Assembly (NCBI GenBank): GCA_976226885.1
Contig: OZ320313.1
Location: 52,638,001-52,702,000, forward strand
Length of the DNA: 64,000 nucleotides
Reading direction: 5' to 3'
From: Iphione sp. A-MEVVRFRX5
Lineage: Eukaryota
Shown here: positions 6,001 through 55,362 of the stretch, piece by piece
Numbering within the stretch: the stretch's first letter is position 1
How the letters are laid out: the number at the start of each line of letters is the position of its first letter
Notes under the pieces: model-generated
Database searches by the model: none
What the model was told of the DNA's origin: nothing
Seen by the model: the letters and a program-made list of their open reading frames with translations, nothing else
Made by a program: the position numbers and the translations under genes

Positions 6001-9000
6001 CATAGCCCGGACGAGGAATATTTCTATCATGAGATCTGTTCTTCACGTGGCATCGTCCTTAGGGGAAATGTGATGATTTCAGATCCTCGTCAAGATAATT
6101 AGAGTCATTTCAAGAGGCTCGTATTTTTTTCCAACAGAAATGTTATCCTGGCGGGGTTGGTGTAGCTTGTTAGAATCTAGAAGTCGTTGACACCCGGAAC
6201 TAGTAAGCGCCAGTCCGGAATTAGTTCGACGGAGCCTGGTTTGGGCCCGACATCCGCGCTATCAACGCATGCCATCAAACACCGCACTCAATCCATCATG
6301 GATTCTGATTGGTCTAAAATGGACCGGCGCTTTCTCCGGGGTGTTTTGTGACTAAGGAGGGAGGGAGCGAGGGCGATGAGGTTGTGAAGCGGAAAGGTGT
6401 CCCTGGACGGGAGGGACACAGCATGGAGGACTGCCAAAAATAGGTGGGGGAGGGGGCTGTAGAGTAACCGGAGGCCAGTCGAAGGCGGCCCCTCCGCTGT
6501 ATCAAAATTGCACAAATTGAATAAAAGGCAATGGCCTGGCGGTATGAGAGTTCGGGCGGATGGCAAGATGAAGAATTGCCTTCATTTCATTAGCCGAGCT
6601 GTGTTGCTGGCACATGAAGCCAACCAGTCAGCGAGTAGTCGGAGGCTCGACTTGATCGTTTTCACTATTACATCAGCGGAGGCCAGTTGCTGGTATCGCC
6701 GCAGAAGCGTCTGCGCCCATCACGTGCTGCCCCCTGGGGGGAATAGAATCAATTTTCTGTCATTTTTCCTCTATCCGACTTGCAGCAAACAGTTCGACCA
6801 TTTTCCAACGTAAATGAACTGTGGCACGAATAAATATGTTCGTAAAGAATTGAAATAATGAATTTTATAAAAACTGACAGTCGTCCTTCGCGCGAAAAAA
6901 AGGTGATGTGGAAATGGCAAAGCTCTAAACTTATAATTGAACAGTCACTTTTTCGACTTTCGTCGTAGGCCGGACTTACACTAATTAAGACACAATTTCA
7001 AACCTCTAAATGACGTGAGTATATCTCGTAGAAATATCGAAAACGAATGGCTGCCTTACAAATTACCAATTCAATTAATGAACTGCAAAGGTGTGGGTAA
7101 ATATTAAATACAGGATCGGTAGATTCTTGTAACATATATACAGAAGGCGTCCATCACTTATCTGGGGTCTCACCTGAATGATTATGGGAAAATAGGATCA
7201 GCACTTTTATCCTGACCAAATCCCACGTGAATCGCCACCACCACTAGGCCACCTGTGCCTCTGCCTTGCAGTCTCATGGAGTAGTTGACTTAGTGAGCTT
7301 GGCAGGCCTGAGTATACAATCCATGGCCACTGTGAACAATTAACTCACCGTTTGCTCGGCGGACTGGGCGCAGACGGCCTGACTGGCTTCCTTAGTGTAC
7401 CAACAACCCCATCGGTCTCTTCCCCACAACTCATGCTAGGCAAATGAAGCACTGGTGGCAAGACAGACCATCGCTCACTCTCTTGTCAATCGATAACAAT
7501 GCACCTCTTAAAAGTTCTCTATATCAACTTGAATTGGTCAATCATTTCAGCCTCCACACGTTGACATTTTCCGGTATAATTACATGTTTGTGAAGGTCGT
7601 TATGTTTACGGATCTGTGATCGCTAGATTACTTGTGACTGAAGATTAACATTCTATGGCGAATCAGGCAATAGCTCTATTTCATTCATCCAATTGTGTGC
7701 TTACTTCTCATGTATTCGACATGTCATATGATGGCAACGGTCCATGGGGACGAAAGATCATGTACTTACAGATTCATAATATAGATTCCCTAAAAGCCGA
7801 GGAAGACCTTAGAAGACAACCGAAGAATGCAACCTCTTTTTGTCTTCTAGTGGAGATTTGCACATATTTTGATGTATACTTTGTGAACCTAATGGAAAAT
7901 TGAAAACAAAGACATCATACGGGGGCTAGTTGGGTGGAATATCATATAAACAGCTCTTAAGTATGTCGAAATATACAGTAAAGGTGAGGCCAACATACTG
8001 CTTCGCTGTTTGGAAGCACATGTAGCTTGAATCATACTAACCTGGATCCCTGCTTAAACAGAAGCCCTCTGTTTACAAGTTTGGTTTTTTGGGGGAAGGA
8101 GTCTGTGATCTGAGTGCCTTTCACCGCGATTCCGTAGACGACTCATGTCATCAGACTCTTAGAATCGTACCTCCCTGTGGGCTCATATAACACCGATGAA
8201 ACCGTTTTCTTTTCGCAAAAAGCGGATAAATATAAACATTGCATATACACCTGTCTGGCTTGTCAGAGCGTTAAGGCCTAGGACACACAAGGGGTTCAGT
8301 ATTGGCATATTCTCAAAAGAAACGACGACGAAAATTTCAGTCGGCCTGAAAGTCAGCTGAACAGTCACCCCTATCAGCTCCATGCCTGACAGTTGTTTCT
8401 GACAGTCGTGCCGACAAGCAAGTCCGACAGCCTGGTTCCAGTAGTTAGTATCAATACCTAGGCCTTTCAGTTGAGCTCAAGAGTCTGTCTCACTTTCAGC
8501 CGCGACGCTTTGCTTCACAGTGAACCGAAAATTCATGGCCGACGATCACTTCCGAAAATCTCGACTGACGGTTCTCGGCACTGAGCTAAAATCTTCCGGT
8601 GAAGGAAGAAGACCGAGACCTCAACTGCCGGCGGCAGCGAAGCGAGTACACATTAGATCAGGTTCTGTGGCGTCTAACTGGATTTGCGACCGTCGATGAG
8701 GCCTGGGACGTCGGTGCTCACCCTTAGGATCCAGCCTCGGGCATGACGACCGCCTCTGATGTGCAAATAATGCACGTTGAGTGTGCCGTGAACGAAGGAA
8801 CATAGGTTTTGTGTGTTCGGTGTTAGGATTGCAAATGTAGTGACTTTAGGTGTCCGTCTTCAATTCTGATTTGACATCTTGCGGGGCAAACGCGTATGAA
8901 TGAAATGATAGCCCTACGGGCCGTTGTAATACACATTACTTAGTTTGAACATCGAAGAAAGCAATTCAAATGAAATTCAAGTGGCCAATAGTAGTTCAAG

Positions 9001-10213: not shown

Positions 10214-12182
10214 AGGAAAAGGGGACATTAAGGGAGGGAGACCAGGAGGCACTGGGATTTGGTGTATGCATCACACATACCCAGAGGACAGTCATTCCGA
10301 CCAGCCAGCGTTGCAAGGTTTAATAAGAAACCGTTAAAAAGAGAGAGGGAGCCGGCTATTAGAGGCAGGAACCGTCAGCAGCGTGGCCTTATTGAACTGA
10401 CAACGACTCACGTCCGCGAAAAACACCTCATTGACAACTAACTATGGTGGTCAGATAGAGTGATAACTCAGTCCCCGTGACCATGCGCTCGGAACTCTGC
10501 CCTGTCCTGTAGTCGTTCAGCTGCTCGGGTAGTGGTGTCGTAGACCCAGCTGTGCCATCCAGGCAAGGATTTATGCCCCTCGTCATAGCGCGCTCGTGCC
10601 TGACGACCGCTAGCGCACGTCGCCGCTACGTCTCGGTCACGTTACGGCTACGCCCTGTCCGTCTTTCATCATAGCATCGACCGCGCGACGGTCACGCAGG
10701 CGCAGTGATCATATTACACTGATTAGCACTGCCGAACTGCCAATGCGCAAGTCAACTGAGGCGCCACCGCCAATCGACCCCTTGTGGAAACACAGACTAT
10801 AAATTTCTACCCGGATTGGACCAGTCGCGACGCTACTTACGTCGTAGACCTGTGTGTGGCCAATACAATTCGCTTCTTTATATATTCTAGTAAGCCCGGT
10901 AAGGCAAACAGTGGAATACGATTTCGATATGACTTCACTGTTTCCTTCAAATCAAAATTCGCTTCAGATGTGTTAAAGTATATATACAAATGTAATTACA
11001 GAACAAGAAAAGACACGGCCCCATTTTTTCAGGTAAGATGTTATAAGATTATTTTAACTTTTCTCTTCCCCTCTCCCTACCCCTCTGTCACCAGTTTCTA
11101 TTGTGCGTGTGTGTCTATGTGCGCGTGTCTGTTCCCTGACACCATTCATTACCAGGGTGAGAAAAATGGCCGCCCTCCCGGAGTTCCTTCCTCCAATTGC
11201 CATCCAGCAGTGAGCAGCTCGCTGGAGTGGCTCCATCCGCTCCTGGGCCCCTAGGTCCCCAATGCCGAGACCATTAATAAAGAAAACCCGTCATTTTCTC
11301 GCCTTTTTTCTGGTCCGCCTCCTGCCTTACTCACTCTATCCTCACCTATCACTACGAACCTCATTAATGTCTGGGTTTATCAAGGCTTTCAGCCAATTAG
11401 TGCGCAGAGGGTAGCGACGCCGGGTGGAGATATCGGTGCAAATTGTCCAGTTTACTTCCAGGGCACGCAGGAATGTGTATTTCTACTAATGACACCATTT
11501 CTCAGCATATAGGCAGGTACACATGGTACACAAGAAATATCATCGGCAAGAAACTGATAGTTTCCCTATCACAAACATACACTGGTCAGCCTAAAGAGAC
11601 ACATTCCACTTTCAATATGATAATAATTCGGTGCGATGTGTCTCCAATAATTTCTACATCAGTGATGAAAGGTGCAGGTAGTTGGCACGTTTGCCAAATT
11701 GAAGATGGAGAGATGATGGAAACGATACATGCATGGCCGTCATAGGCGCCGCCCTCGTTCAGAATGGGTTCCACCCATATGTTTTGAATTTTGCAATGAG
11801 ACCGTCTCCCAGGCGATAGCTTTCACAGCCACCCTACAGGACGTCGATATATTGTCCCTAATCTCTGCCATATTTACCATGCATCACTTTAGTCGCTGTC
11901 CTTGAAAAAAGGACGCGACGACTAACAAGGAAACTGTAACCCCTGTTGCCTGTCACATGTTTTCGATTTATGGTTGGAATTGTTCTAACCTACACCAATT
12001 TATATCAATCATGTTCACTCTACAGATGAGAGATAAGAAAAAAAGAACAATTTCAAGACATTCCCGTGTGCATATTATATTATCGAACAGCAAATGTAGC
12101 AGTACCAAAAATATGTGCTTGAAGGAAAAAAGATTCACCTAGATTCTTATCAAGCTAATTCTATTGTAGAATAAGGTAAGTC

Positions 12183-12417
12183 GTGGTGCCACGGCCAGAT
12201 GGAGTGTACTCGGTGACCCTGGTACTGGTAATAAGTGTACAGAGTCGTGGTGCCACAGTTTGGTAAGATGTACTCAGTGACCTCGGTATTACAGTTGAAT
12301 AAGATAAGTCGTGGTGCCACGGCTAGATTAGGTGCACTTTGTGACCCTAAAGGCTGGACTTAAGAAAGAACCGTGGCACCACCGTTATTCATAGCAAAGA
12401 AAAAGTTAGGGGTGACC
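12183..12417. promoter_or_regulatory. U3 tandem repeat (about 64-bp period) carrying four GTGG(TG/CA)CCAC palindromes and four GTGACC motifs
   Basis: GTGGTGCCAC at 12183, 12247 and 12311, and GTGGCACCAC at 12373. GTGACC at 12213, 12277, 12341 (each exactly 30 nt after a palindrome start) and 12412. The same array is in the 3' LTR at +9905. Confidence 0.85.
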
Positions 12418-12560
12418 TTGGGCCCTGGTAATCCAGGCCCCTATTACTTTGTAGCTTTTGCCTGTGCATTGATTGGTGGAACAGAATGACACTGAACATG
12501 TTGTAGCAGTTTTATTCCATACATTGATACATGGCCTGATCACATGACACTGTGGATTGC

Positions 12561-12590
12561 TATAAATAAGAGCCCAGTGTGGCAAATAAA
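12561..12590 (+). promoter_or_regulatory. LTR TATA box (TATAAAT, 12561) and AATAAA poly(A) signal (12585-12590); 3' LTR copies at 22466 and 22490-22495
   Basis: Motifs are in the sequence, in the order usual for a U3/R junction. Confidence 0.7.
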
Positions 12591-12784
12591 GTCAGTCTGA
12601 ACTTGGATTACGTTGTGGCACTTGTCTCTTCAGGGAATGATAGGAACACAAAACCACTTGGAGCAACCTTAAGGGTGGGCTTGAGGATTACCTAGTGGAG
12701 CAATACTAGTAAGGCAACTAAGCCAGGATACTAGCAGTCATAGCTGGATACTGCCAAGTGGAGAATTAAACACGCATATTACAC

Positions 12785-12802
12785 TGGTGTCAGAAATGGG
12801 AT
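12785..12802 (+). other. Primer-binding site, probably tRNA-Leu
   Basis: TGGTGTCAGAAATGGGAT starts 1 nt after the 5' LTR. It matches the complement of the tRNA-Leu 3' end (TGGTGTCAGAAGTGGGAT) with one mismatch. Confidence 0.85.
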
Positions 12803-12814
12803 TCCCCAGACAGG

Positions 12815-13666
12815 ATGGCTACAGCGTATGTCTCAGTGGATGATGAGGTTCAGATTCGGGTGACTAGTCCTACACCCGCCGAGGAAGAAGACGAACACTT
12901 TGAGATTGCTCCAGAGGAGCCATTGAAGATGAACACCTTGAAACCCGAACGCTTCGATGGGAAGACTGTCGATTGGGACAGCTGGATTGGCCAATTTTCC
13001 GAGTGGGCGGATGCATGCCGTTGGGGCGAAGATACCAAATGTTCGGCCCTAACTTTGTCGCTCACCGGGACAGCACGCATGTTCTACGGAGACTTACCCG
13101 CAGATGACAAGAGGGATTATGCCTCGAGGGTGGCAGCCCTGGAGCGGCGCTTCGGCCGACGCAGGGATCGGGTGGTAGCGATGCAGAAACTGTCCGGAGT
13201 GAGACGACAGAAGGACGAGGACATCCGAGACCTGGCTGACCGGGTAAGGAGGTTAGTTCGCACAGCTTATCCCGATGTAACCGGGGAGACCAGGGAACTG
13301 GCAGCCGTGGCGGCCTTTCAGAGGGCCTTAGCAGACTCCTTGCATCTCAAATGCCTGGAGGCAAAATGCACCACCCTTGACAATGCCATCCAGGTAGTGG
13401 AGACTCAAGAGCGGTTCCGGGCGAAGACAGTTAATGTGGTACAACAGCCGCCCGCTCCCCCAGTCACTCCGACCTGGAAGAAGGAAGTGGAGGAGATCAT
13501 TGCGCAGGAATTACGCAAGTTCCGTGAAGGAGAGAAAGCCCAGGAGGAGGGAAAACCTCGGAGACCGCGATTTACGGGATGCTACCAATGTGGACAACAA
13601 GGCCTCTTTAAGCGGGATTGCCCACAGGCCCCTACCCAGGGAAACGCCCAGCAGCCAGCCCAGTAG
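12815..13666 (+). CDS. gag: Gag (283 aa) with capsid-like core and a degenerate C-terminal zinc knuckle
   Basis: ORF begins just after the PBS. Contains retrotransposon Gag-like motifs (KPERFDGKTVDWDSWIGQF; RRQKDEDIRDLADRVRRLVRTAYP) and CYQCGQQGLFKRDC (C-X2-C-X4-L-X4-C). Confidence 0.92.
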   Translation: MATAYVSVDDEVQIRVTSPTPAEEEDEHFEIAPEEPLKMNTLKPERFDGKTVDWDSWIGQFSEWADACRWGEDTKCSALTLSLTGTARMFYGDLPADDKRDYASRVAALERRFGRRRDRVVAMQKLSGVRRQKDEDIRDLADRVRRLVRTAYPDVTGETRELAAVAAFQRALADSLHLKCLEAKCTTLDNAIQVVETQERFRAKTVNVVQQPPAPPVTPTWKKEVEEIIAQELRKFREGEKAQEEGKPRRPRFTGCYQCGQQGLFKRDCPQAPTQGNAQQPAQ

Positions 13667-16600
13667 GCCAGGAGGGCTTGGCTGAACAGACCCCTACGGG
13701 GCAGATAATGGAACAAGGCCAGGGGCCACATTTACAGGTAAGCGTGAGGGGTGACAAATACTTGTTTCTCATTGACACGGGGGCTGAAGTTTCCATTATT
13801 AACCCGGGGGTGGTCCCTGGCCTAGATGGTGAAGGCGGGGATGTCCGTATTACTGGGGCAGGGGGGCACGTTATCCCCACATTGGGCCGGGAGATTCTGG
13901 AGGTTGAGATAGCGGGTCAACAGTTTACTCATCCTTTCCTGATTGCCAACATTGGGGAGGAGGGTCTGCTGGGGAGTGATTTCCTCAACCAACATCAGGC
14001 AGTTATAGATTTAGCACAGGGGAGGGTTCGATTTGGCCCAGGGATAGGCACCCGACAGATTCTGGGAGAACGGGTCCCTTTGCGTTTGGCCCATGACGTT
14101 ACCCTTCCCCCGGGAGAGGGAATAGCAGTCCCCCTAACTAATGGGGGTGGTGACGCCTTCCTAGTGGAGGGAGTAGAGGAGGACCAATTGAGGAGAGGGA
14201 TCTTTGGGATTCGAAGTGTTGTCAGAACTGCATTACCTTTGTGGAATCTCCAAAACCAAGAAGTTACGTTGACACAGGGTACCCTGGTGGCAATGGGTTA
14301 CCCTGCCAGTTGTCTAGAGAACAAGGAAGGAGGGTACCCGGCTAGAGTCTGTGCCGTTCGGAGGGAAGTGGAAGCAGTGCTGAAGAATTTGCTAGCGCAG
14401 GCCGCCCCACGCTTGGAGCACGAAGAACAAGGAGCATTAGCCGAGGTGCTCAGGAAACATGCGGCCGTGTTTGCTCAGACAAAGGGGGACTTGGGGAGGA
14501 CCGATATCGTTCAACACCGAATTTATCTGACCGACCCCCACCCCATCAAGCAACCTCCCAGGCGCCTCCCGCTGACACGCCGGAAGGAGGAGCGGGAGTT
14601 AGTACAAGAGATGAAGACTTTGGGGGTGATACAGGAGAGTAATAGCCCTTGGTCCAGCCCCGTGGTCATGGTGCGAAAGAAAGACGGTACCACCCGGTTC
14701 TGCGTAGATTATCGAAGGCTCAACCAGCAGACTAAGGTGGATGCATACCCCCTGCAGAGAATTGACGACTCATTGAGTACCCTGGCCGGAGCTCGCTATT
14801 TCTGTTCATTAGACTTGGCGTCGGGGTACTGGCAAGTACGAATGCACCCCGATGACCAAGAGAAGACGGCCTTTTCTACGTCGGTGGGCCTGTATGAGTT
14901 CACCGTGATGCCATTCGGTCTGGTGAATGCTCCGGCCACGTTTGAACGCTTGATGGATACTGTGCTTCGTGGATTAGCCTGGGAACAATGTCTGGTGTAC
15001 TTGGATGACATTCTGGTTTTCGGTCGGGACTTTGAAGAGACCTTGTGTCGCTTGGACAATGTACTGAGCCGCATCGCCAGTGCCGGCCTGAAACTAAAGC
15101 CTACGAAGTGTCAGTTGTTTCTGGAGGAAGTCAGTTTTCTAGGCCATGTGGTGTCGCAAAAAGGAGTAGCTACTGACCCCGTGAAGACAAAAGATATTAT
15201 CGAGTGGCCAACCCCACGATGCACGACAGACGTCCGTGCTTTCCTGGGGATCTGTTCCTACTATCGCCGACATGTTCCCCAGTTCGCCGATCTAGCAGCC
15301 CCGCTTAACCGGCTGACCAGCTCGCGAGTAAGATTCTCCTGGGGCCCCCAAGAGGAGGCTGCCTTCCAGAGCCTCAAACGCGCACTCAGCACCAGCCCGG
15401 TCCTGGGTTATCCTCATGCAGAAGGCAGGTACTACCTGGACACCGACGCCAGCAATGTTGGCCTGGGGGCCGTTCTGGCCCAGGAGCAGTTGGGCGAAGA
15501 AGTTGTGTTAGCCTACTTCAGCAGGAGCCTCAGCGAGGCTGAGCGGCGGTACTGCGTCATGAGAAGGGAACTGCTGGCCGTGGTAGCTGCACTCAAGCAC
15601 TTTCATTTCTACCTGTATGGGCAAGACGTCACTGTACGCACTGATAATGGGGCGGTGAGCTGGCTGACGAGGATAAAAGACCCTGAGGGACAGCTAGCCA
15701 GGTGGCTGGAGAGGATCGGCCAATACCAAGTACAATTCGTGCATCGGGCCGGCCGCCTGAATTCAAACGCAGATGCACTCTCTCGGCGCATTTGCAGACA
15801 GTGCAAACAGCCTCACCTGGAGCAAGAGGAACCCATATCAGCCACGGTACGGGTGGTCACGCGAAGTCAAATCACTGACGCCTGTTCACAAGATCTGCGC
15901 CGGGAGCAGCTATTAGACGAGGCAATAGGGCCTGTCCTGCGACTAAAAGAGAACGAGAACGACCGACCCTTGTGGGACAAGGTCTCGGCCTTGCCCGCCT
16001 GCGCCAAAGCCCTCTGGAGACAGTGGGACCGGCTAGTGGTGCATGATGGACTCCTACAACGCCGCTGGTATGGGATCGGGGATGGGCCGTCTAGGCTACA
16101 GGTTGTACTCCCCGCCAGCCGACGAGATGCAGCCATCGAAGAAGTACATGCAGGTCGCACGGGAAGTCACCTGGCAACGGATCGTACCACCTACCTGATT
16201 GCCCTCGCCTATTATTGGCCTGGGATGAGGCGAGAGGTGGAGGCCTTCTGCCGCCGCTGTCATTGCGCCCTGCTGAATGTCAACCCGTACAAGCCCCAAA
16301 CGACGTTAGTGACCTACCTGCCGGGAGAACCGATGGAGAGGTGGTCCATGGATGTGGCCGGCCCCCTGCCTGAGACTCGGCGGGGGAACAAATACATACT
16401 GATGGTGGGTGATTATTTTACGAAGTGGTTAGAGGCTTTCGCCATGCCGGACCAGAAGGCTGGCCGGGTGGCTACGCTCCTTGCTGAGGAAGTTATCTCA
16501 CGATATGGGTGCTTCTTGGAAATCCACAGCGACCAGGGCACGAACTTCTGCAGTGAGGTCCTAACAGCACTCTGCCAGTTTCTGGAAATTAAGAAGACCC

Positions 16601-17274
16601 GTACGACCCCGCGTCACCCACAGAGTGATGGATTTATAGAGAGGAGTTTCCGTACTGTTGGGCGCATGGTGAAAGCGCACTGTTATGAGACACAAGACGA
16701 TTGGGACGAGGCCTTACCCTACCTTATGATGGCATATAGGGCCTCCCCGCAATCTAGCACGGGGTATACCCCCAACCTCCTAATGTTCGGACGAGAGGTC
16801 GTACTACCGGTACATGCCTGGGCTGGGTTCCCGCAACATTGTCCCGACGAACGACCCCTCCCGGAGAGGGTAGCTGAAGTGAGTCGCCGACTTCAAGTCG
16901 CTTTCAAGACCGTGCGACACCATCTCCAGCGAGCTGCTAAGACCCAGGGACGGGCGTACGATCGGAGGGTCGAGGGAACTCAACTTCGGGAAGGGGACGT
17001 CGTTTGGCTACACGAAGCCCAACCCCCAAGAGGTCAAAGCCCGAAGACCTACTTCCCCTGGATTGGACCCTGGCTGGTTGTCAAACGATTGGACGATGCA
17101 CGGTATGTCGTTCAGCGCACGCGAAAGGCGAGACCGAAGGTAGTTCATCGCAACCGCTTGCGGCGCTACTGTAGTGGGAATCTACCACGGTGGATAGTCA
17201 GTTGGCGGCGAGCCCATCTCCCGACGGACGGAGACCGGGCAGGGACAGACGATTCAAAGGAAGAGAGGCTATAG
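13618..17274 (+). CDS. pol: Pol polyprotein: aspartic protease, reverse transcriptase, RNase H, integrase (probably entered by frameshift near 13645, not at the listed start)
   Basis: PR: FLIDTGAEVS. RT: LDLASGYWQV, MPFGLVNAPATF, YLDD. RNase H: LDTDASNVGLGAVL, RELLAVV, TDN, ADALSR. IN: H-X6-H finger, MDVAGP / HSDQG / FIERSF (DDE) and a GPW version of the GPY/F motif. Uninterrupted 1218-codon frame. Confidence 0.97.
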   Translation: MPTGPYPGKRPAASPVGQEGLAEQTPTGQIMEQGQGPHLQVSVRGDKYLFLIDTGAEVSIINPGVVPGLDGEGGDVRITGAGGHVIPTLGREILEVEIAGQQFTHPFLIANIGEEGLLGSDFLNQHQAVIDLAQGRVRFGPGIGTRQILGERVPLRLAHDVTLPPGEGIAVPLTNGGGDAFLVEGVEEDQLRRGIFGIRSVVRTALPLWNLQNQEVTLTQGTLVAMGYPASCLENKEGGYPARVCAVRREVEAVLKNLLAQAAPRLEHEEQGALAEVLRKHAAVFAQTKGDLGRTDIVQHRIYLTDPHPIKQPPRRLPLTRRKEERELVQEMKTLGVIQESNSPWSSPVVMVRKKDGTTRFCVDYRRLNQQTKVDAYPLQRIDDSLSTLAGARYFCSLDLASGYWQVRMHPDDQEKTAFSTSVGLYEFTVMPFGLVNAPATFERLMDTVLRGLAWEQCLVYLDDILVFGRDFEETLCRLDNVLSRIASAGLKLKPTKCQLFLEEVSFLGHVVSQKGVATDPVKTKDIIEWPTPRCTTDVRAFLGICSYYRRHVPQFADLAAPLNRLTSSRVRFSWGPQEEAAFQSLKRALSTSPVLGYPHAEGRYYLDTDASNVGLGAVLAQEQLGEEVVLAYFSRSLSEAERRYCVMRRELLAVVAALKHFHFYLYGQDVTVRTDNGAVSWLTRIKDPEGQLARWLERIGQYQVQFVHRAGRLNSNADALSRRICRQCKQPHLEQEEPISATVRVVTRSQITDACSQDLRREQLLDEAIGPVLRLKENENDRPLWDKVSALPACAKALWRQWDRLVVHDGLLQRRWYGIGDGPSRLQVVLPASRRDAAIEEVHAGRTGSHLATDRTTYLIALAYYWPGMRREVEAFCRRCHCALLNVNPYKPQTTLVTYLPGEPMERWSMDVAGPLPETRRGNKYILMVGDYFTKWLEAFAMPDQKAGRVATLLAEEVISRYGCFLEIHSDQGTNFCSEVLTALCQFLEIKKTRTTPRHPQSDGFIERSFRTVGRMVKAHCYETQDDWDEALPYLMMAYRASPQSSTGYTPNLLMFGREVVLPVHAWAGFPQHCPDERPLPERVAEVSRRLQVAFKTVRHHLQRAAKTQGRAYDRRVEGTQLREGDVVWLHEAQPPRGQSPKTYFPWIGPWLVVKRLDDARYVVQRTRKARPKVVHRNRLRRYCSGNLPRWIVSWRRAHLPTDGDRAGTDDSKEERL
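13639..13697 (+). other. -1 programmed ribosomal frameshift signal (gag-pol)
   Basis: Slippery heptamer G GGA AAC (13639-13645) lies in the gag frame and pol is in the -1 frame. After a 6-nt spacer comes a stem CAGCCAGCCC (13652-13661) / GGGCTTGGCTG (13674-13684). Confidence 0.8.
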
Positions 17275-17779
17275 AAGGATGCCTCGGCGAAACGGCGAAC
17301 GGAAAACCCCCATCTCTTGAAGTGCTCTTGAAAAATGTTCAGGGTAGGCGACGTGGGAAGCCTGAGGTACCAAGATGCCTGAAAGTCCCAGGAGTGGGCG
17401 AGGTGGGCAGCCCGAGGGTGCGTAGACACCCAAAAACAGCCCAGGGAAGAGGGAGACGCAGATCCCTGCAGGTGCCGGAAATATGGTCGGAGGTACGAGG
17501 AGCTCACCTGAAGTTGCAATTCGTGCAACGAGAAAAAGAGGCTCCTGGGGGAGGACTGATGAACGCCCCGAGATGCGAGCTGAAAACCCGGAAAGGTTCA
17601 TGGGGGGAGGCGACCATCCCCTAGGGCACCTGAAAATCTCTGTGGAGGGAGAGAATGACTGAACACCCTGCAAGAGCACTGGTCAAGAGGAGTTGGGGGG
17701 GAAACGGCAAGGAGATGTGGACCTCCTGGAACTCGGAATGGGAGTTCGAAAGAGCCCAGAAGAAACGGAGAGAAGGAAA

Positions 17780-17910
17780 CCGAGATGCGGGCCATTCCCT
17801 CTGGAAGTGACGCCAAGATGTGGTCCTTGTCCTCTGGTAGAAGAAAGGCCAAGCCACGCTCTATGTCCTCTAGAAGTGAAGCCAAGGTGAGGTCCTTGTC
17901 CTCTAGATGG
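17780..17910. repeat. Four degenerate 33-36 bp tandem repeats (CCRAGRTG...CCTCTRGA)
   Basis: Units start at 17780, 17813, 17849 and 17882, so spacings are 33, 36 and 33. Related cores lie at 17370, 17568 and 17710. Confidence 0.75.
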
Positions 17911-18018
17911 AGGGGAGAAAAGACAGTCAATGATCATTGAAAAAAAAAAATCAGTGGGTTATAATCTACAGTAATAGACGGAACACTGAACGCAAGTATA
18001 CAAGATGTGAAAGAACAA

Positions 18019-18024
18019 TTTATT
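18019..18024 (-). terminator. Poly(A) signal for the antisense gene
   Basis: AATAAA on the minus strand, 88 nt after the stop codon at 18112, followed by a T-rich stretch. Confidence 0.55.
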
Positions 18025-18111
18025 ACAGAGTAACGTATTTTCAGTCTGAAGTGCAAAACACATATACTAGAGGACGATATGTACAGTTCGGAAGTATACA
18101 GTCCGGCAGCC

Positions 18112-18848
18112 CTACTCTAAGATGATCGGATAGCTAGCCGAATCTCCGGGTTGCATCTCAGGAAACCAGTCCCGCAGAATATCGTCGGGCAGGTCATCTA
18201 ACAGAATCCTGCCGAGTGCTGGACCGGTAGCTGGTGAGCCAACCGGAGTGGGGCGTGAAGGCGTGTCCTGAGTGGTGCCACTGGAGGAGGATGAGGGCGA
18301 GCACGGCCCGAAGAGAGCGTCCGCCAGCAGGCTGATAGACCCGGCCGAACTCGGGCGGCCGGAGTCCGTACTGGAGGGCGGATCCCAGGGGTCCAGCCGG
18401 TCGGTGGTCCAGCTCCCTGGAGACCAAGAAAGGCTGGATGAAGCGGCCGGTGAGAGGCAGGGCGGCGTCATAGACCCCCCCCGGTACCAGCGAGGAGACG
18501 GCTCGGGGGGATCACCCAGCGTGGTGAAGTACGATGCCACCATCCGGGGGCTGATCTCCGGGGAGACCACCTCTGTGCGGGGCGCGTAAGACGGGCTCCT
18601 TGGAATGGTCGAAGGTGGTGTGAAGGATCGGGGGTCGGCGACTGATGGCTCAAGGGGGTAGACAGAAATATCTACCCGATGGTTCGGCCCGAAGAGCCGG
18701 ATGGTGCCGGGGGCTGGGACAAACAGTGGCTCTGTGAGAATCGGGTAGAGGCCGAAGATCCTGATTGTCGGCCCCGGGGTGCCGATGTCCAGCGCCCGGT
18801 AGTACCAGTCCGGGGGCTGGGATCTGAAAGAGGAAGAGAGCTGCGATG

Positions 18849-18888
<40 letters not shown>

Positions 18889-19282
18889 GGAAGAAGAAGA
18901 TTGGACTCACCCAGACCAACTCCGGGAGAATATGGCTGCCACACCTGAAAACAAGAGAGGGTGGAATCTTGTAACAGCAAACACAACTGCAACCATCCCA
19001 ACAGGTAAAGTCTCTGACAACACTTGGTAGGCAAGGGTAAAAGGAGAGAACCCCCATTGGTGAGCAGGAAAGGGGAGGCTTGCAGGGGGGGTACACCCCA
19101 TTGGAGGGAGGAAGGGGGAGGTTCACCCCCCAACCATAAGGGTAGGCCCTACCCTGGGAGGGAGGAAGCAAGAGGGGGGGCTCTCCAGTTAACCCCTCTA
19201 GATAAATACACTGAGGTAGGGAAGCTTACCTGTCCTCCATGGGGGGGTATCCCATCAAGTAGGCAGGTGGCCAGTAGTCCAT
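18112..19282 (-). CDS. Three-exon antisense accessory gene, 271 aa: join(complement 19230-19282, 18911-18944, 18112-18840)
   Basis: ATG at 19282. Intron 1 (285 nt): CAG|GTAAGC ... CTCTCTTGTTTTCAG|. Intron 2 (70 nt): TGG|GTGAGT ... T39-CATCGCAG|. Exons of 53, 34 and 729 nt join in frame. Protein: MDYWPPAYLMGYPPMEDRCGSHILPELVWLSSSFRSQPPDWYYRALDIGTPGPTIRIFGLYPILTEPLFVPAPGTIRLFGPNHRVDISVYPLE...ILLDDLPDDILRDWFPEMQPGDSASYPIILE. Confidence 0.8.
18849..18887 (+). repeat. A39 homopolymer (the poly-T tract of antisense intron 2)
   Basis: Seen directly. It lies between GTGAGT and CAG on the minus strand. Confidence 0.95.
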
Positions 19283-19313
19283 GATGACAATCCTCGTCGA
19301 GGCCGAGTCAGCG

Positions 19314-19349
19314 AGTGACGGCGGGTCGAGTGCAGCGCCCCCTTATATA
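19314..19349 (-). promoter_or_regulatory. Internal antisense core promoter (TATATAAG plus Inr-like TCACT)
   Basis: Minus-strand TATATAAG at 19349-19342. TCACT with its A at 19316, 33 nt downstream of the TATA start. First ATG at 19282. Confidence 0.65.
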
Positions 19350-19374
19350 GCTGCCGCAGGCCAGAAAAATAATC

Positions 19375-20182
19375 GTGGTGCCACGGGCCGAAAATCTTAT
19401 GACGCAATTTGTGAACTACGCCGCGGGGAAACGGATTCGACATGCAACGAGGAGGAACAAGTCAGGAATAACGGTGGTGCCACGCCCCGGGGGACATTTG
19501 TGGATCAAGACAGGAAATATTGCAAGAAGAACATCGCGTAACGAATCGTGGCACCACGAGTGGGGCTGGGCCGGAAATGGATAACGTCAACATCCGCGTC
19601 TGCCTCGCTCTGGATCCGGCTACGAAGAAAAATAGCCGTGGTGCCACGGATAAAAAGTGAAGGGTGGAGGTGACTTAAAATTAGCACACGACAAGTTTAA
19701 ACAGTGTACAGAGAAGAAAAGGGTTGAAATAACTGTGGTGCCACGGGCAGAAACGTTTGCAAATAAAAACGAAAACTTTGGGAGAAATCGCGGCACCACG
19801 GTTTGCTTCAGAAGATCAGCGTCCACTGTTGGATTTGCTCCCCCTCCCCCGTGTTTCTCCAGGAACAGGACAGGCAGGGCCCCCGGTCAACTGTGCACCA
19901 GGGGAAGGTGAAAACAAAGATCTATCCACCAATTTTGCGGAAGGAGGAGGAAACTTACATCGAGCCCCAACGAAGCGACAAGAAAAATCCGTGGCACCAC
20001 GGGCGGACTGGTCGTGAGACGTCAGGTAATTCCTTCACTTTGAATAAGATTGCCCTCCCCGGATTGTTATTATTCTCCTGTGATACGTAATCTATACGGG
20101 ATCTGTGTGCCTAAATCTTGTTTTCGCCGTATGTGACCGTGGTACCCCGAAACACCTGGACCCTAAAAAACGGTGGCACCGC
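19375..20182. promoter_or_regulatory. Internal array of the LTR palindrome GTGG(TG/CA)CCAC
   Basis: Exact copies at 19375, 19474, 19548, 19638, 19735 and 19991. One-mismatch copies at 19790 and 20173. Most are preceded by an A-rich run and flanked as CGTGG..CCACG. Confidence 0.85.
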
Positions 20183-20189
20183 GGCCAGA

Positions 20190-21581
20190 ATGCCTCGCCA
20201 TAAGATCGACGGCCCCACTCTCCCGCGCACCCTGGACAAGGACGACCCCCTCCCGGAGGGGACCAAGCTCTGCCCCAAGTGTGAGGTCGCTGGGAAGCGA
20301 CGCCCCTTCTACCCTGGCGACTCCTTGAAGCGCCATGACGACGAATTTCATCAAGGAAAGCGCAGGCGTTTTGTCCGTTGTTTTCTGTGTCCGAAGACAC
20401 TCAGCGAGGACCAAACCTGGGTATCCCACCACCGCCGGTACCATCCATGGGCGGTGAACCTGGGGATGGTGGAGCGCCCCTATCGCCGCTTATATGATGC
20501 GAACCCGGCACCGACAGTTGAGGCTCCCGATGACGAGATCACCGAAATTATTCTGTGGGCCCGAGAATTACGCCAGCGGGGAGACTACCTCGGACCAGAG
20601 GAAGCCGAGGCCATGCTGGCTGCCTCATCGCGGAGGGCCCCGGCCCCTCTACCGCTGCGGAAATGCCATCTAGCTGATCCTCGACCTGAAGGGGCATTGG
20701 AATTGGCAACCCCACGACTACCTCCGACACCGGACTCCGAAGAGGATGCCCACCGCCCTGTTGGCTCACCTCAGCCAGGCCCTTCCTGGGAGGCCGCTCC
20801 TCGGACCGGGCCATCCGCCGAGCCAGAAGGTGCCACTGCCCAACTAGAAGGGGTCGGTGCTAGGGATACCGGCGCCACTGGAGAGACCGACTACCCAACT
20901 GCTGCTGGCAACCTCCCACTGTTGTTGGAAGGGCGATTGGTCCGCCTCGCCCGTGCGGACGTCCCCCCTGGGTGGGTTGACCCCGCCACTAGGTTAGTCC
21001 GCGACATGCTGGATGGAGTCGCCCATCCGAGGATACCCGTGATGAGGAGCCGTTTCGAGCCAGCGGCTGTGCGCCTTCCCCCGACAATTACCTGGCCGCC
21101 ACCCCGTTGGGGGGAGATGACACCAGCTCAACGCATGATGACGAGTGCTTCGCTGGCGTGGGTGCTTCAGCTTGCCGAGGAGGGGGACCGGCTGCCAGGG
21201 ACATTGCTAGGCCCCCTAAGGAAACGACCTGCTCTTCTGCTGCCGGGACTGGAAATACCGACAGCCAACGAGTGGGGGGACCCGGCCGACCTCCTCACTC
21301 GCAATAACAAAACCATTGAAGCCGCCGAAGCCGCCCTGCGTGACACCCAACCCGGACCCTCCCGAGGACCCCGCCGGGTAAACACAGAGCTCCTCCAGTG
21401 GACCCAGCAGGCCCAGGAGGCTCATCGACTTCATCAAGCCCGACACCCCACCTTAGCGGACATTTGTAACCATGCGCCGCCCCTGCAGTCCCTCCTCAGT
21501 CTCGAGGACGTCTGGGGAGATGATGAAGAGGAGGAGTTAAGCACCGAGGCGGGTGACGCCCGAGAAGGTTCTACAGAGTAA
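20190..21581 (+). CDS. Accessory protein (463 aa): two N-terminal C2H2-type zinc fingers, Pro-rich linker, uncharacterised C-terminal domain, acidic tail
   Basis: Long open frame with first ATG at 20190. Finger 1: C-X2-C-X8-F-X5-L-X2-H-X4-H (CPKC...FYPGDSLKRHDDEFH). Finger 2: C-X2-C-X3-L-X5-W-X2-H-X4-H (CFLCPKTLSEDQTWVSHHRRYH). Ends DVWGDDEEEELSTEAGDAREGSTE. Confidence 0.85.
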   Translation: MPRHKIDGPTLPRTLDKDDPLPEGTKLCPKCEVAGKRRPFYPGDSLKRHDDEFHQGKRRRFVRCFLCPKTLSEDQTWVSHHRRYHPWAVNLGMVERPYRRLYDANPAPTVEAPDDEITEIILWARELRQRGDYLGPEEAEAMLAASSRRAPAPLPLRKCHLADPRPEGALELATPRLPPTPDSEEDAHRPVGSPQPGPSWEAAPRTGPSAEPEGATAQLEGVGARDTGATGETDYPTAAGNLPLLLEGRLVRLARADVPPGWVDPATRLVRDMLDGVAHPRIPVMRSRFEPAAVRLPPTITWPPPRWGEMTPAQRMMTSASLAWVLQLAEEGDRLPGTLLGPLRKRPALLLPGLEIPTANEWGDPADLLTRNNKTIEAAEAALRDTQPGPSRGPRRVNTELLQWTQQAQEAHRLHQARHPTLADICNHAPPLQSLLSLEDVWGDDEEEELSTEAGDAREGSTE

Positions 21582-22056
21582 AGAAGGGATGAGTCACTGT
21601 TAAGCTAATCTTTTAGAAGGAAAGCATAAAAGGAACTGTATCCGAAAAAAAAATATATTTTGAAGGTTCTTTGTTTGTTGCTTGGTAAGCAAGCTGTACT
21701 CCTGCCCCCAATGGGGGATTGCTATTCTGGATGCTCGTGAGCAGGAAACAAAAGAGGACTGTACCTCCAAAAAAAAAAAAATTTTTTTGACCACTGGATT
21801 TCACCCTCTGTGAGGGGTGGCTACACAAGAGAGTTAAGGCCAAAAGTAGAGGACTGTACCTCACAAAAATAAGGAAGAATTAAAACACGAGTATTTATTC
21901 AAGGATGGACTGTTTGACCCCAATCAGGGAGCACGGGGGGGGGGGCCAACAACTTATAAGACTATACCTACCCCAGAAGTTGAAGGAGGACTCCCCGATA
22001 TGCCCGGCTAGATGGTAAGTACCCTGACTCCTGTTTCACGAGGGGGACTGTGTTTT

Positions 22057-22069
22057 AAGGAGGGGAGAG
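22057..22069 (+). other. Polypurine tract
   Basis: AAGGAGGGGAGAG immediately before the TG of the 3' LTR. Confidence 0.9.
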
Positions 22070-22688
22070 TGTAGAATAAGGTAAGTCGTGGTGCCACGGC
22101 CAGATGGAGTGTACTCGGTGACCCTGGTACTGGTAATAAGTGTACAGAGTCGTGGTGCCACAGTTTGGTAAGATGTACTCAGTGACCTCGGTATTACAGT
22201 TGAATAAGATAAGTCGTGGTGCCACGGCTAGATTAGGTGCACTTTGTGACCCTAAAGGCTGGACTTAAGAAAGAACCGTGGCACCACCGTTATTCATAGC
22301 AAAGAAAAAGTTAGGGGTGACCTTGGGCCCTGGTAATCCAGGCCCCTATTACTTTGTAGCTTTTGCCTGTGCATTGATTGGTGGAACAGAATGACACTGA
22401 ACATGTTGTAGCAGTTTTATTCCATACATTGATACATGGCCTGATCACATGACACTGTGGATTGCTATAAATAAGAGCCCAGTGTGGCAAATAAAGTCAG
22501 TCTGAACTTGGATTACGTTGTGGCACTTGTCTCTTCAGGGAATGATAGGAACACAAAACCACTTGGAGCAACCTTAAGGGTGGGCTTGAGGATTACCTAG
22601 TGGAGCAATACTAGTAAGGCAACTAAGCCAGGATACTAGCAGTCATAGCTGGATACTGCCAAGTGGAGAATTAAACACGCATATTACA
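22070..22688 (+). repeat. 3' LTR
   Basis: Copy of 12165-12783, followed by the TSD CTAT. Confidence 0.97.
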
Positions 22689-25600
22689 CTATCATGGACT
22701 CTTGTCTATGGTTTATAAGTAGTGGTTCTTCCGACAAACATGTATCATATTTCTTAGTCAAATCGAGCATTTTTTCCAAGGGAAATTTGCAACACGTCAG
22801 CTTGGTAGCTACCGTATATTTTGTTCAGAAAAAAACACCCATTTTCCCAGAGGTACAATATAATCTGCAACAAACAAAAAAAAGAAAGCATTTCTCTAGT
22901 TATGCTGCACTGACAAATGGCAGAAATGGTAAAATGTGAAATTGTTCTCCACTGGTAGGAAATACTATAGCTATCCCCTCTTTTCCTGAAGACACGTAAA
23001 ATATAATTTACTTCCCGGATACCCTTGGGATGTCACTAACCTATATTCATGACACATGAGGAATTTCACTGTACATGTATATGTACATGTACATCTCAAA
23101 CACGTGTTATATTGAGATCATTTAGGAGACGAGAATGAAAACCCATCGTGTCATGAAGAGGGTGACTGGTAAACGGTAAAAATAAAATACAAACACATTT
23201 GCGGCATGTTAAAAGTTGAAATGTCAAACCTTGGTGACAGCTTACCGAATAACCTGAGTCTGGTTCCCGATGGAGAACAACAATAGGAAACGGGGCGCAG
23301 TGACACTGAAACATTCATGTCAAAGCCACCATTCACCCTCAATATGGATGGAGGAGCGTGTAAGGCGGTAAAAGGGAGGGTGGATTCGGGGGTTTTCTTT
23401 CGATAAGATAGGGTGCCATGTGGACATGTCTCCGACGACCAGAAAGCTGTGAAATAGGTACAGACGATGTACCGTGGCGTCAGTAAATGTCCTGCATCAA
23501 CGCCTGCTCTGGCGCCCAGTTTCGCGAAATTATATAACAGAACATCATTATACATCTACAATAACTGCTTATATGTCATATAAAAGTACTTGTCGTCTGG
23601 TCGGGACACTTTAATAATGTTGTTTAGAAAACTAATGGAAGGAAGGAATTCGCCTGGAAAAGAAAGTGCATACACTTTTTATTTATACGAAACCACATGG
23701 CTCTTGATTTCCTCTTCGTACAGGGGATATCTTGATGAAAAGTTAGCACCAGTGGCACTCTACAGTTGTATTTTTATTGGCGACAAGCGAACCGTATGTG
23801 CCTTGACGTAAATATTCGTCAATAGCCTTTAAACTAAGATATGCACAGTACTTTTGCTGCATGGATATGAATATATTGCGACTCAGTCACACCCAGTGAC
23901 AAGTACACATAAATGTAGATGTGCATATAAAGTGTACATGCTAATTATGCATTCGAGATTTGAGTGTACAAATCAATGTAGAGTATCATTCTGTTCATTG
24001 GTACCTGCAGCGGAAAGCCTTTTCGCAGTACATCCGAAGAGTTGCCTGGAACATTGTCGCCCAACTCGTGCCGAGCCTTCACTATAGGCTCTTTATTGCA
24101 CATATAGAGAGATGTTGGCTCAAACACGGAGATAAAAGGGCGGGAAGAGAAAGAGAGTGGAGCTGGAGGTTGGCGATGAGAGTGTCGGGGAGCACCCGAT
24201 GCGACCGGCGCCAGCGAAGGGCTAATTGATTCGGACGTGCTGGAAAGCGGACACATGTCATTCTATTACGGCCCATGTCAACTCAATAACGCTGATGCCT
24301 CGGGGGTCCCTTGCTGCTCCCTCACCGCGCAGCAAGGCCGGCGCCGACTAGCGGGCAAAATGTCACAGTTTGTGTCCGTGTTGAGGCCGAGCAGGGCAAG
24401 TTGAAGGTGGCGACCTCCAACCCTCGCCGGAGTCGGCCAGGCTTGGCGACATTTAGCTGTCAGTGGCGGATGGAGAAGCCCGATGAGCAGGCCCTGTTTA
24501 TTTACATGCCAACCGACAGGCGGGGCATTGGTGAGGGCCATGCAGAAATGGCTGTAATTTTAGGCAGGCCCTACGAAAAGGACAGGGCAGACTCGGACCA
24601 ACGAACCGAGAGGCAGCAGTGTGTATGACCTCTTCTCCTGGGAAAAGATGCCACATACGGAAACAAATCAGCCGAAGGAAGATCTATGCATACGGAGATT
24701 CGCATATAATCGTACCTAGCGCCATAAAACAAAGTTGTCGTAAAGAAATATAGAAATGTGATTCTAATAGCTAACATTCTAATTCGTCGAAAGCACCGAA
24801 CTGCCGTTCTTGTTATCCCATTCCGTTATTGCATGATCGAACGGAAAATCTAATCAACTTTATTGGTTAAAGTGTGCATTTTGTATTTACCGGGAAAGAG
24901 GCGCAGCCCAGACATATCTTACTACTGTACATCGCTGTTAACAGTTATCGCGAAGACCAAGCTGGAAGTCTATTGAGGCATGTAGCCAATAGAATATAAG
25001 GTGAACGGAACCCCTGGCGAGGGAAGCATTTCAAAGAGATGGCATGAATGGAAGCAAACGCCTGGAAAATCGAGACATGTGTTGTGCGCACCGGTAAGAC
25101 GAACGGCGATCAATGGAAGAAGCCCAATCACGCGTCGACGGACGGATGAATTATCAATAAGGGTGTTTATAACGGACTGACGTGATTCACCACTAACCTA
25201 ATGACCCCGACGTCCTCTAGCGGCCGTTTAACCGCATGTGACGGACTCATTTTTGTATCCAGTTTCGCTTTCGTTGAGATCTTTAAGAAGCCGGTTTGAA
25301 ATAATTAATGGCTTCTTCTGGATATGCATACGTCAATTAGATGGAAAGGCCCTTGTTAATACCTTTGACAGAAATAGACAGAAATGTAAGAGTTGCTGAT
25401 GCCTTTATATAGCCATGCCACATGTCTAATCTAATATACAGGCAATTCAATGAAAACCTATACATGTAAATCAGCAGTCTGATAAGTAGCAACTGTCCTT
25501 GTGTTGGTCGAGGAATTCACGCGACGTCGCTTGCGTCGTTATTCAAATTGGTGCCCTTTAAGATTAATGCTAAGTCTGTGAGGGAAGGGGTGGCGACGCT

Positions 25601-54445: not shown

Positions 54446-55362
54446 CCAAAAAGTATCCTTAAGTATTTAGTGGAAAGGACTTTATCTACCATTTACACTG
54501 ATTACAATTTCCACGGCTATAGCATTGGATAATAATTGATAAAGATGGGAATAATGTAGCATTTTAATGCAGAAGTGTCTGCAAACAACCAGGCATGGCC
54601 ACGGATGGGGGTCAAGCCTTGGCAGATGCTTTTAACAACATCAGTCAGACCAATTTACATGGTGGGGCTGCAGAGGCACAATGGCAGAATCTCGTGGATG
54701 AGTACTTTCTCTATGAGGAAGAGGTGAAGGAGGGCCTGGTGGATGAGGGGGATGTTGAGGAGGTAGAAGAACAATTGGAGGAAGAGGAAGAACCCTTAGG
54801 AGACATCTATGATTCACTGGTAGTCACTGATCCTACTGAGGAGATCCTGAGAGACTAGTGGGTGCACTGTGAAAACTTCAGGTGAGTTCTTTTAATCTGC
54901 CACAACAGTGACACGCAGTTGCTCCTAACAATTGAAGAACAAACATATTAGAGAATTGTCTCTATAGTTGCAAATCCCCTTTCAGATTCTGAATTCATGT
55001 TAGAATAGGTTTTTATCATTGCATTTGTATTTAGGGCCATTTTAGAATTTTCTAAACTATGAGAAACTGACCATGTGAACATATCCTGTAGGAGTTTGTG
55101 CAAAATTAATAGGTTTTGACTGTTGTATTTAGGGCCATTGTAAATTTTTTTAAACTGGGAAACTGACCACGTGAACATATCCTGCAGGTGCTTTTGTAAA
55201 CACTAAATTACGACAACTGCAGCAAACAGTTCATGGCAACCGAGTTGGCAGACGGCAAGAATTTTTCCAGCTGTCTTCAGGTACTTATTGCTTCCCAAAA
55301 AGTATCCTTAAGTATGTAGTGGAAAGGACTTTATCTACCATTTACACTGATTACAATTTCCA
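54446..55362. repeat. 68-bp direct repeats (54446-54513 and 55295-55362, one mismatch) enclosing a two-copy about 100-bp tandem repeat (about 55024-55200)
   Basis: CCAAAAAGTATCCTTAAGTAT[T/G]TAGTGGAAAGGACTTTATCTACCATTTACACTGATTACAATTTCCA occurs twice. TGTATTTAGGGCCATT...GAAACTGACCA[T/C]GTGAACATATCCTG occurs twice. Confidence 0.85.
54595..54881 (+). pseudogene. Exon-like coding fragment with an in-frame stop, possibly from a DNA transposon
   Basis: Protein-like MATDGGQALADAFNNISQTNLHGGAAEAQWQNLVDEYF plus an acidic stretch. Acceptor TTTAATGCAG upstream and strong donor CAG|GTGAGT at 54882. A TAG (54856-54858) interrupts the frame 8 codons before the donor. Confidence 0.4.

Follow-up and report, generated by a model that had tools for sequence, protein, structure and literature searches.

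A Gypsy retrotransposon with a zinc-finger accessory gene that is conserved in related lineages

The common view of long terminal repeat (LTR) retrotransposons is that of gag-pol machines whose transcription relies on host factors. The present work concerns a 10,524-bp Ty3/Gypsy LTR retrotransposon that occupies positions 12165-22688 of a 64,000-nucleotide stretch of contig OZ320313.1 from Iphione sp. (the whole stretch is called the window below). In this animal element, an accessory gene other than env, the third open reading frame (ORF3), lies between pol and the 3' LTR, and the main value of the finding is the conserved family to which ORF3 belongs, recognized by a pair of C2H2 zinc fingers and a C-terminal block here called WPP. 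Complex retroviruses, such as the foamy viruses with Tas and an internal promoter and human T-lymphotropic virus 1 (HTLV-1) with Tax and the antisense HBZ, share with this element the presence of accessory genes 3' of pol, possibly also an internal promoter with shared cis elements, and possibly a spliced antisense gene. The element differs from them in having no env and in being of Metaviridae type. An earlier note on this DNA had drawn the parallel to these viruses, but searches of Pfam and of PDB sequences with the element's own proteins gave no sequence or domain similarity, neither to a trans-activator nor to an antisense bZIP protein, and the likeness, as far as sequences can tell, is one of layout only.

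Arrays of short sites are also known from transposable elements outside the retroviruses. In Arabidopsis, the VANC protein of VANDAL21 has an anti-silencing role and targets arrays of short motifs within the transposon that encodes it; this system differs in being a plant DNA transposon, and VANC is not a C2H2 protein. The Su(Hw) array of Drosophila gypsy consists of about a dozen copies of a short site in non-coding DNA, served by a 12-finger protein; it lies in the 5' untranslated region, acts as an insulator and is not repeated in U3. The window element likewise combines an array of short sites in Gypsy non-coding DNA with a zinc-finger protein, but in Drosophila that protein is encoded by the host.

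Among animal LTR retrotransposons, those of bdelloid rotifers (Vesta, Juno and others) carry varied non-env ORF3s that were gained and lost along the pol tree and typically have their own spliced messages (PMC5408684). The window element is similar in having a family-specific non-env third ORF past pol. The bdelloid proteins are, however, GDSL esterases, DEDDy exonucleases, and coiled-coil or transmembrane proteins, the word 'zinc' is absent from the paper, and neither a motif array shared by LTR and internal region nor an antisense unit is described there (PMC5408684). The Drosophila MDG1 group (412, mdg1, Stalker, blood) consists of env-less Gypsy elements with two short ORFs kept by selection, sORF1 and sORF2, the first of which is predicted to be a helix-turn-helix protein (PMC11952523). 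Here the likeness is that of an animal Gypsy element with accessory proteins and no env, and the pol relatives of the window element are named after transposon 412. The sORFs differ in lying upstream of gag, in being short (63-107 aa for sORF2) and in being read from the unspliced LTR transcript (PMC11952523), while in the window gag starts 31 nt past the 5' LTR, with no room for an sORF of that type, and the accessory gene, past pol, encodes a finger protein of 463 aa.

In some classes of the Gypsy-like Oikopleura element Tor, the third gene is transcribed from an extra internal promoter and not from the 5' LTR (PMC4402516). The gene in question is env, neither a regulator encoded by the element nor an antisense gene is described (PMC4402516), and the Tor promoter was shown by experiment, whereas that of the window element is deduced from sequence. 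Plant elements of the Tat/Ogre/Retand, Grande and RIRE2 types carry extra sense and antisense ORFs in a long stretch that separates pol from the 3' LTR; gene23 of Grande is antisense with its own promoter, and the products of the extra ORFs are orphans, some of them nuclear (PMC7264820, PMC11963269). These are plant lineages, and since the word 'zinc' is absent from the review, no finger protein is described for them. A targeted literature search, limited in its coverage, found no C2H2 ORF3 in a Gypsy element. The earlier suggestion of novelty is to be narrowed accordingly: non-env accessory ORFs, internal promoters and antisense ORFs are already documented in LTR retrotransposons.

ORF3 and its counterparts in related elements

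ORF3 (20190-21581, plus strand) is open over its 463 codons and is the sole long sense ORF in the 4,795 bp between pol and the 3' LTR (17275-22069). None of the ORFs in this region has an env-type Pfam match, even at E values up to 10. The stop-free run of ORF3, 488 codons, was reached in none of 1000 dinucleotide shuffles, and its codon periodicity has a p value of 2e-7. The layout of the protein is an N-terminal pair of C2H2 zinc fingers with a basic linker (20271-20444), a variable acidic or low-complexity middle, and the C-terminal WPP block (20952-21299), which is built around an invariant W-P-P; its acidic stretches include an acidic C-terminal tail. By pattern matching, the classical C2H2 spacing (C-x2-C ... 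hydrophobic-x5-hydrophobic-x2-H-x3-5-H) occurs twice in tandem, with five extra residues in the hairpin of the first finger.

Taken alone, the window ORF3 falls below the Pfam cut for zf-C2H2. It matches, with an E value of 8e-6, the finger pairs of a cellular C2H2 protein that itself scores zf-C2H2 at 2.7e-33, and a profile of ORF3 finger pairs matches solved DNA-binding C2H2 structures (Aart, CTCF, Kaiso and TFIIIA), the best at 1.4e-10. A word-based protein search with ORF3 returned no homologues, and an exhaustive HMMER scan returned one cellular finger protein only and no full-length homologue. Exact look-ups of the element's gag, pol and ORF3 in the protein collection gave no matches, and a scan of the JGI metagenomes with the finger alignment gave only L004, an ordinary multi-finger cellular gene.

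Relatives of the element were located through pol. Four of them (L001, L010, L012 and L013), from three other assemblies and with pol identities of 42-47%, have a sense ORF at the same place 3' of pol, and ORF3 is absent from L002, L003 and L011. The window element, the L001 family, L010 and L013 have both finger pair and WPP block, and in L013 the finger pair is continuous with the called ORF; L012 has the WPP block only, which leaves the finger pair in three of the four relatives. One assembly contributed both L010 and L012, and a second one L013. Among full-length pol matches, the best is P0002, with 46.5% identity; it belongs to L001, which is 14.2 kb long, has identical LTRs and a 4-bp duplication, and resembles the window element in its primer binding site (PBS) and purine tract. 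The ORF after its pol, on the sense strand, encodes 921 aa and matches the window protein in the N-terminal finger pair (E 2e-5) and in the C-terminal block (E 0.012); the middle of the L001 protein is Arg/Ser-rich and recalls RNA-processing proteins. At 90% identity, the cluster of L001 ORF3 has 427 members and that of L001 pol has 777.

A profile of the WPP block made from the window and the L001 family only ranks L012 (4.8e-5) and L010 (1.3e-3) first among ca 1,800 six-frame ORFs, and the block can be aligned over five lineages. Its identity compares with that of the pol core as 46% to 71% for L010 and L012 and as 25% to 58% for the window and L001, with lower values for the other pairs. 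That the two sets of identities track each other fits an old acquisition followed by vertical descent with some losses.

Selection was estimated from a comparison of five unedited L001-family copies. The ratio of non-synonymous to synonymous rates (dN/dS) is 0.10-0.12 for pol and 0.30 for ORF3, where 30.5 changes are synonymous and 27.5 non-synonymous, a synonymous excess with a binomial p of 1.4e-5. A 138-aa antisense ORF of the same family, with 2 synonymous and 11 non-synonymous changes and a dN/dS of 2.1, evolves neutrally. In one of the four copies L005-L008, pol is in two pieces, with one break. Together, the alignments and substitution counts show ORF3 to be old, to have diverged in step with pol and, as measured in the L001 family, to be maintained by purifying selection. 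On these comparisons, the conservation of a finger-WPP ORF3 across lineages is solid.

A zinc-finger gene has thus been kept with pol across 42-47% pol identity, in high-copy and recently active families of four or more genomes. Some animal Gypsy lineages therefore seem to supply a nucleic-acid-binding cofactor of their own. The combination of finger pair and WPP block also constitutes a searchable gene family for asking how retrotransposons gain regulatory or host-interaction functions as they approach the complexity of retroviruses.

Two features of the relatives may be mentioned here. In L012, ca 1.7 kb between pol and ORF3 are 92-93% identical to the 3' part of its own LTR (one copy was seen), and this segment is either an internal promoter or a rearranged copy. 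In L010, the distance between the 5' LTR and gag is unusually long, ca 4 kb (4978-8936), with a short pol-like fragment.

Motif arrays and the module between pol and ORF3

In the relatives, 0.6-1.5 kb separate pol from ORF3, while the window family has a 2.9-kb module there. The module holds copies of the 10-mer GTGGTGCCAC, which occurs in 15 exact copies inside the element and in none elsewhere in the window. With up to one mismatch and on either strand, the window holds 19 matches compared to 3.4 expected, a number reached by none of 100 shuffles, and 17 of the 19 are within the element, including the 15 exact ones. Both the U3 arrays and the internal one exceed by far what chance would produce. 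The earlier note had spoken of arrays of a 10-bp palindrome with four copies in each U3, and both the counts and the arrays were recovered; the dyad, however, is imperfect, with 5-bp inverted arms CGTGG and CCACG around a 2-bp centre of TG or CA, and the site is composite and directional.

The U3 cluster in the 5' LTR (12183-12382) consists of three copies in the same orientation, within a degenerate 64-bp tandem unit, and a fourth that is inverted along with its A-rich flank. The same four copies recur at 22088-22287 in the 3' LTR. In each LTR they lie 180-380 bp upstream of the TATA box TATAAATA (12561-12568 in the 5' LTR), which would place them in U3. The internal array (19375-20182) has eight copies, six exact and two with one mismatch, spaced by 55-201 bp and in mixed orientations, and the last of them ends 8 nt before the ATG of ORF3. 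A ninth internal copy is found at 18272, within the antisense ORF described below.

Most internal copies have an A-rich run a few bases to the 5' side on the plus strand. Apart from this run, their 80-nt flanks are 25-40% identical, which indicates that the eight copies are independent instances and not duplicates of a longer unit. The inverted U3 copy and its flank match one internal copy at 19 of 19 bases; since the flank travels with the inverted copy, the site would be a composite of ca 20 bp with a dyad core and a direction. We also considered the internal array as a diverged copy of the LTR, and this was rejected, the similarity between LTR and internal region being confined to sites of 11-21 bp. 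The arrays are clearly selected cis elements common to two promoter-like regions.

A literature search for the motif word gave primers and one fungal promoter motif, GTGGtgCCAC (the same 10-mer), which is an over-represented palindrome in the promoters of a secondary-metabolite gene cluster of Fusarium graminearum (PMC4198257). This match is probably a coincidence, yet it shows that a factor can use the word as its site. A different word, similar to GGACTGTACCTC, recurs downstream of the ORF3 stop and ahead of the purine tract (21600-21880), in three to four copies that each precede an A run.

We now turn to the minus strand, where a candidate antisense transcription unit (18019-19350) can be modelled from signals and frame; the model is unverified. 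It would begin with TATATAA (19349-19343), ca 60 nt from an ATG in good context at 19282. Exon 1 (19282-19230) would be followed by an intron (19229-18824) with the donor CAG/GTAAGC, 53 nt past the ATG, a T39 tract (18887-18849) and an acceptor at 18824/18823. Exon 2 (18823-18112) includes the stop at 18112, and AATAAA follows at 18024-18019. The frame is open to 18112 only when exon 1 is joined directly to this acceptor, and the predicted product is a Pro/Ser-rich protein of 254 aa. An antisense-oriented intron would survive the RNA cycle of the element, in agreement with the model.

Among 1000 dinucleotide shuffles, in which the longest run averaged 146 codons, 11 reached the 264 stop-free codons of the antisense frame. 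The periodicity of the exon is modest (p 0.011), with its own frame the best of three, and its codon usage is no better than background. The product has no homologues among 5.8 billion proteins, no bZIP according to Pfam and PDB sequences, and no counterpart in the relatives compared, L001 and L010. Of the two accessory genes that had been placed after pol, ORF3 is thus a real gene, judging from shuffles, homologues and selection, but the antisense gene has the standing of a model. A translated antisense gene is possible, although we lean slightly against it; transcription of the antisense strand in some form is likelier than that. By its sequence, the interval that separates the two accessory ORFs resembles a bidirectional promoter with a TATA box.

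A three-exon model of the antisense unit, with a small exon-like piece at ca 18.9 kb, was rejected because it leaves the long frame. On the plus strand, the tract directly upstream of the candidate acceptor is an uninterrupted A39 (18849-18887), an unusually long internal homopolymer for an element with identical LTRs. Its interpretation as the tail of a captured sense-strand retrocopy was rejected, the only open frame there being on the other strand.

The families L001, L010 and L013, each of which has ORF3, show no motif array shared by LTR and internal region. The U3 repeat of L001 is GGRACGA, with ten copies in U3 and no internal array. L010 has a tandem array past its ORF that is absent from its LTR, and L013 has no room for the module and no words shared between LTR and internal region. 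The expected co-occurrence of finger ORF, antisense exons and motif did therefore not materialize in these relatives. Since they keep ORF3 without the arrays, the circuit envisaged in the earlier note is not a conserved property of the gene, and the conserved job of ORF3 is independent of the arrays. The L010 array (16990-17650) consists of four units of ca 163 bp with TGCCA-N3-TGGCA dyads, directly past ORF3. L001 also has a 99-bp tandem array of 6.8 copies before its 3' LTR (20674-21349).

Readings of the accessory region

The explanation that we prefer overall, and whose chances we regard as evenly balanced, is a young Gypsy element with a conserved finger-WPP cofactor, ORF3, and an extra enhancer-type module under a probable host factor. 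The element belongs to a group of Gypsy lineages with a third sense gene between pol and the 3' LTR. ORF3 would be a nuclear nucleic-acid-binding cofactor of the element's own cycle, its fingers binding nucleic acid and its WPP block a conserved partner. To this the window family adds the 2.9-kb module between pol and ORF3, with a two-way TATA followed by eight composite sites, each an A-rich run and a CGTGG-NN-CCACG dyad. The sites would together act as one enhancer-type module, through which a single factor controls both the LTR promoter and the internal one. The best candidate for this factor is a dimeric host transcription factor, and ORF3 itself is a less likely one. From the internal promoter, ORF3 would be expressed along with an antisense transcript, translated or not. 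The window element is the most elaborate member seen, since its internal promoter region is studded with motifs and it may have an antisense gene with an intron; as an antisense-oriented intron can survive reverse transcription, it would offer a natural case for studying how a module is added.

It is important to point out that several observations weigh against this explanation. The internal promoter, the splice and the translation of both accessory ORFs are predictions from sequence signals. No second copy of the window's own family was found in the window self-comparison or in the protein look-ups, and the selection estimates are those of the L001 copies. The distribution of the gene is patchy, with no such ORF in L002, L003 and L011 at similar pol distance. 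Between lineages, the pairwise similarity of ORF3 is low, 20-34% over short blocks with single-pair E values from 2e-5 to 0.012, and a finger-pair profile made without L010 failed to recover the L010 fingers. The WPP block has no structural or family match in Pfam or among solved structures, and a single-sequence structure model of ORF3 has a predicted local distance difference test (pLDDT) score of 38 and is unusable.

In the circuit proposed by the earlier note, the ORF3 protein, probably as a dimer, would bind the dyad motif and activate or de-silence the LTR and the internal promoter, including its own, with the antisense product as effector or modulator. Such a circuit would make sense of a motif that is common to U3 and the inter-ORF region, with one copy just before the ORF3 ATG, and ORF3 does combine DNA-binding-type fingers with a basic linker and with acidic stretches; the window and L001 also differ both in finger helix residues and in U3 repeats, although this concerns two families only. 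We nevertheless consider it unlikely, given that L001, L010 and L013 have ORF3 without a shared array and that L001 and L010 have no counterpart of the antisense product. Two fingers would read ca 6 bp, while the site is a composite of ca 20 bp with dyad arms, which is unexpected for a two-finger monomer, and a dimeric or multi-domain host factor would be no worse a match than ORF3 for the dyad core and its A-rich half. No result ties the fingers to the motif, and the Pfam and PDB searches revealed no viral trans-activator. Still more far-reaching is the idea that an animal Gypsy clade encodes, in the finger-WPP ORF3, its own sequence-specific transcription factor that binds U3 and an internal bidirectional promoter, a switch coupled to a spliced antisense gene and an independently arisen counterpart of complex-retrovirus regulation; judging from the sequences compared, we regard this as quite improbable.

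Arrays of host-factor sites are known in Gypsy elements, and the window array resembles these. The arrays could therefore bind a host protein in a non-promoter role, such as boundary or insulator function or chromatin targeting, with ORF3 acting elsewhere, in RNA export or packaging, in integration targeting or in countering silencing. The eight independent copies, spaced by 55-200 bp in non-coding DNA, would suit this role, as would the conservation of ORF3 without any array and the Arg/Ser-rich middle of the L001 protein. However, the U3 copies are where an enhancer is usually found, 180-380 bp ahead of the LTR TATA, the internal copies adjoin a TATA box, and there is no candidate host factor, the sole literature match of the word being the fungal motif; we give this alternative little probability. 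We rate equally low the possibility that the 2.9-kb module is a passenger, with an antisense ORF that is open by chance on a pyrimidine-rich strand, so that only gag, pol and ORF3 matter. The 264-codon run appears in 1.1% of the shuffles, the Pro/Ser-rich product is without homologues, the antisense ORFs of the L001 family evolve neutrally, and the relatives manage with a much shorter distance between pol and ORF3, all of which would be expected of a passenger. What speaks for function is that a 10-mer repeated nine times with unrelated flanks is neither chance nor simple duplication, that TATA, start context, strong donor, pyrimidine-tract acceptor, frame continuity and poly(A) signal come in the right order, and that the antisense exon is weakly periodic in its own frame. 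In addition, an element with identical LTRs has just carried the whole module through a replication cycle.

Anatomy of the element and its surroundings

The earlier description of a full-length Gypsy element at 12165-22688 is confirmed, and its LTR ends, short target duplication, PBS and polypurine tract are those of a Ty3/Gypsy (Metaviridae-type) element. The LTRs (12165-12783 and 22070-22688, plus strand) are 619 bp long, run from TG to CA and are 100% identical, and the same four bases, CTAT, are found directly outside both of them (12161-12164 and 22689-22692). A PBS-like word that begins with TGG (12785-12800) follows 1 nt past the 5' LTR, with similar words at the equivalent place in L001 and L010, and a polypurine tract (22057-22069) adjoins the 3' LTR. 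The element was inserted recently, and gag, pol and ORF3 are uninterrupted, with no stops or frameshifts counted in the three frames. In the LTR, the TATA box and an AATAAA (12585-12590) are ca 17 nt apart. Given this short distance, R would be very short and the poly(A) signal would lie just upstream of the predicted start site.

The gag frame (12815-13666) is open and encodes 283 aa, with a weak CCHC-knuckle match near the C-terminus and 39% identity to L001 gag. The pol frame (13618-17274), open throughout, is in the -1 frame relative to gag, and the two overlap. Within the overlap, the heptamer GGGAAAC (13639-13645) stands in the zero frame of gag; this is the usual arrangement for programmed frameshifting, and the heptamer is a candidate -1 ribosomal frameshift site. 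The domains of pol are in Gypsy order, with protease (35-129), reverse transcriptase (352-511), RNase H (575-703) and integrase (832-1182), the latter with H2C2 and p58-C domains, and the Pfam matches include RVT_1 (4.5e-34) and rve (1.6e-13). Pol groups with Gypsy-type polyproteins of the same Pfam architecture (6,226 matches at E 1e-50 or better), which are named transposon 412 or K02A2.6-like in NCBI records; the named relatives are from arthropods, a sea cucumber and a fish. A pol scan of bacterial and archaeal genomes gave one 36% fragment only.

The element has a GC content of 55% against a background of 44%, and L001 has 60.5% in a flank of 34.6%; these lineages stay GC-rich whatever the host background. 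The observed/expected ratio of CpG in the flanks of the window element, 0.81-0.84, indicates that the host does not have a vertebrate-type methylated genome; from this ratio and the named pol relatives, it would be an animal and most likely an invertebrate. No further element-like sequence was found elsewhere in the window, Rfam and tRNA scans of the window gave no matches, and neither did Pfam on the six largest flank ORFs. Among the relatives, L011 sits in a transposon-rich region, flanked by piggyBac-like (DDE_Tnp_1_7) and Harbinger-like (DDE_Tnp_4 plus Myb) transposase genes. Two repeats in the window complete the description. The spacer past pol has a 33-bp tandem repeat (17798-17904) of 3.2 copies with 66% matches, and far from the element there is a 71-nt direct repeat (54446-54516 and 55295-55365), the two copies of which are 97% identical and 849 bp apart.

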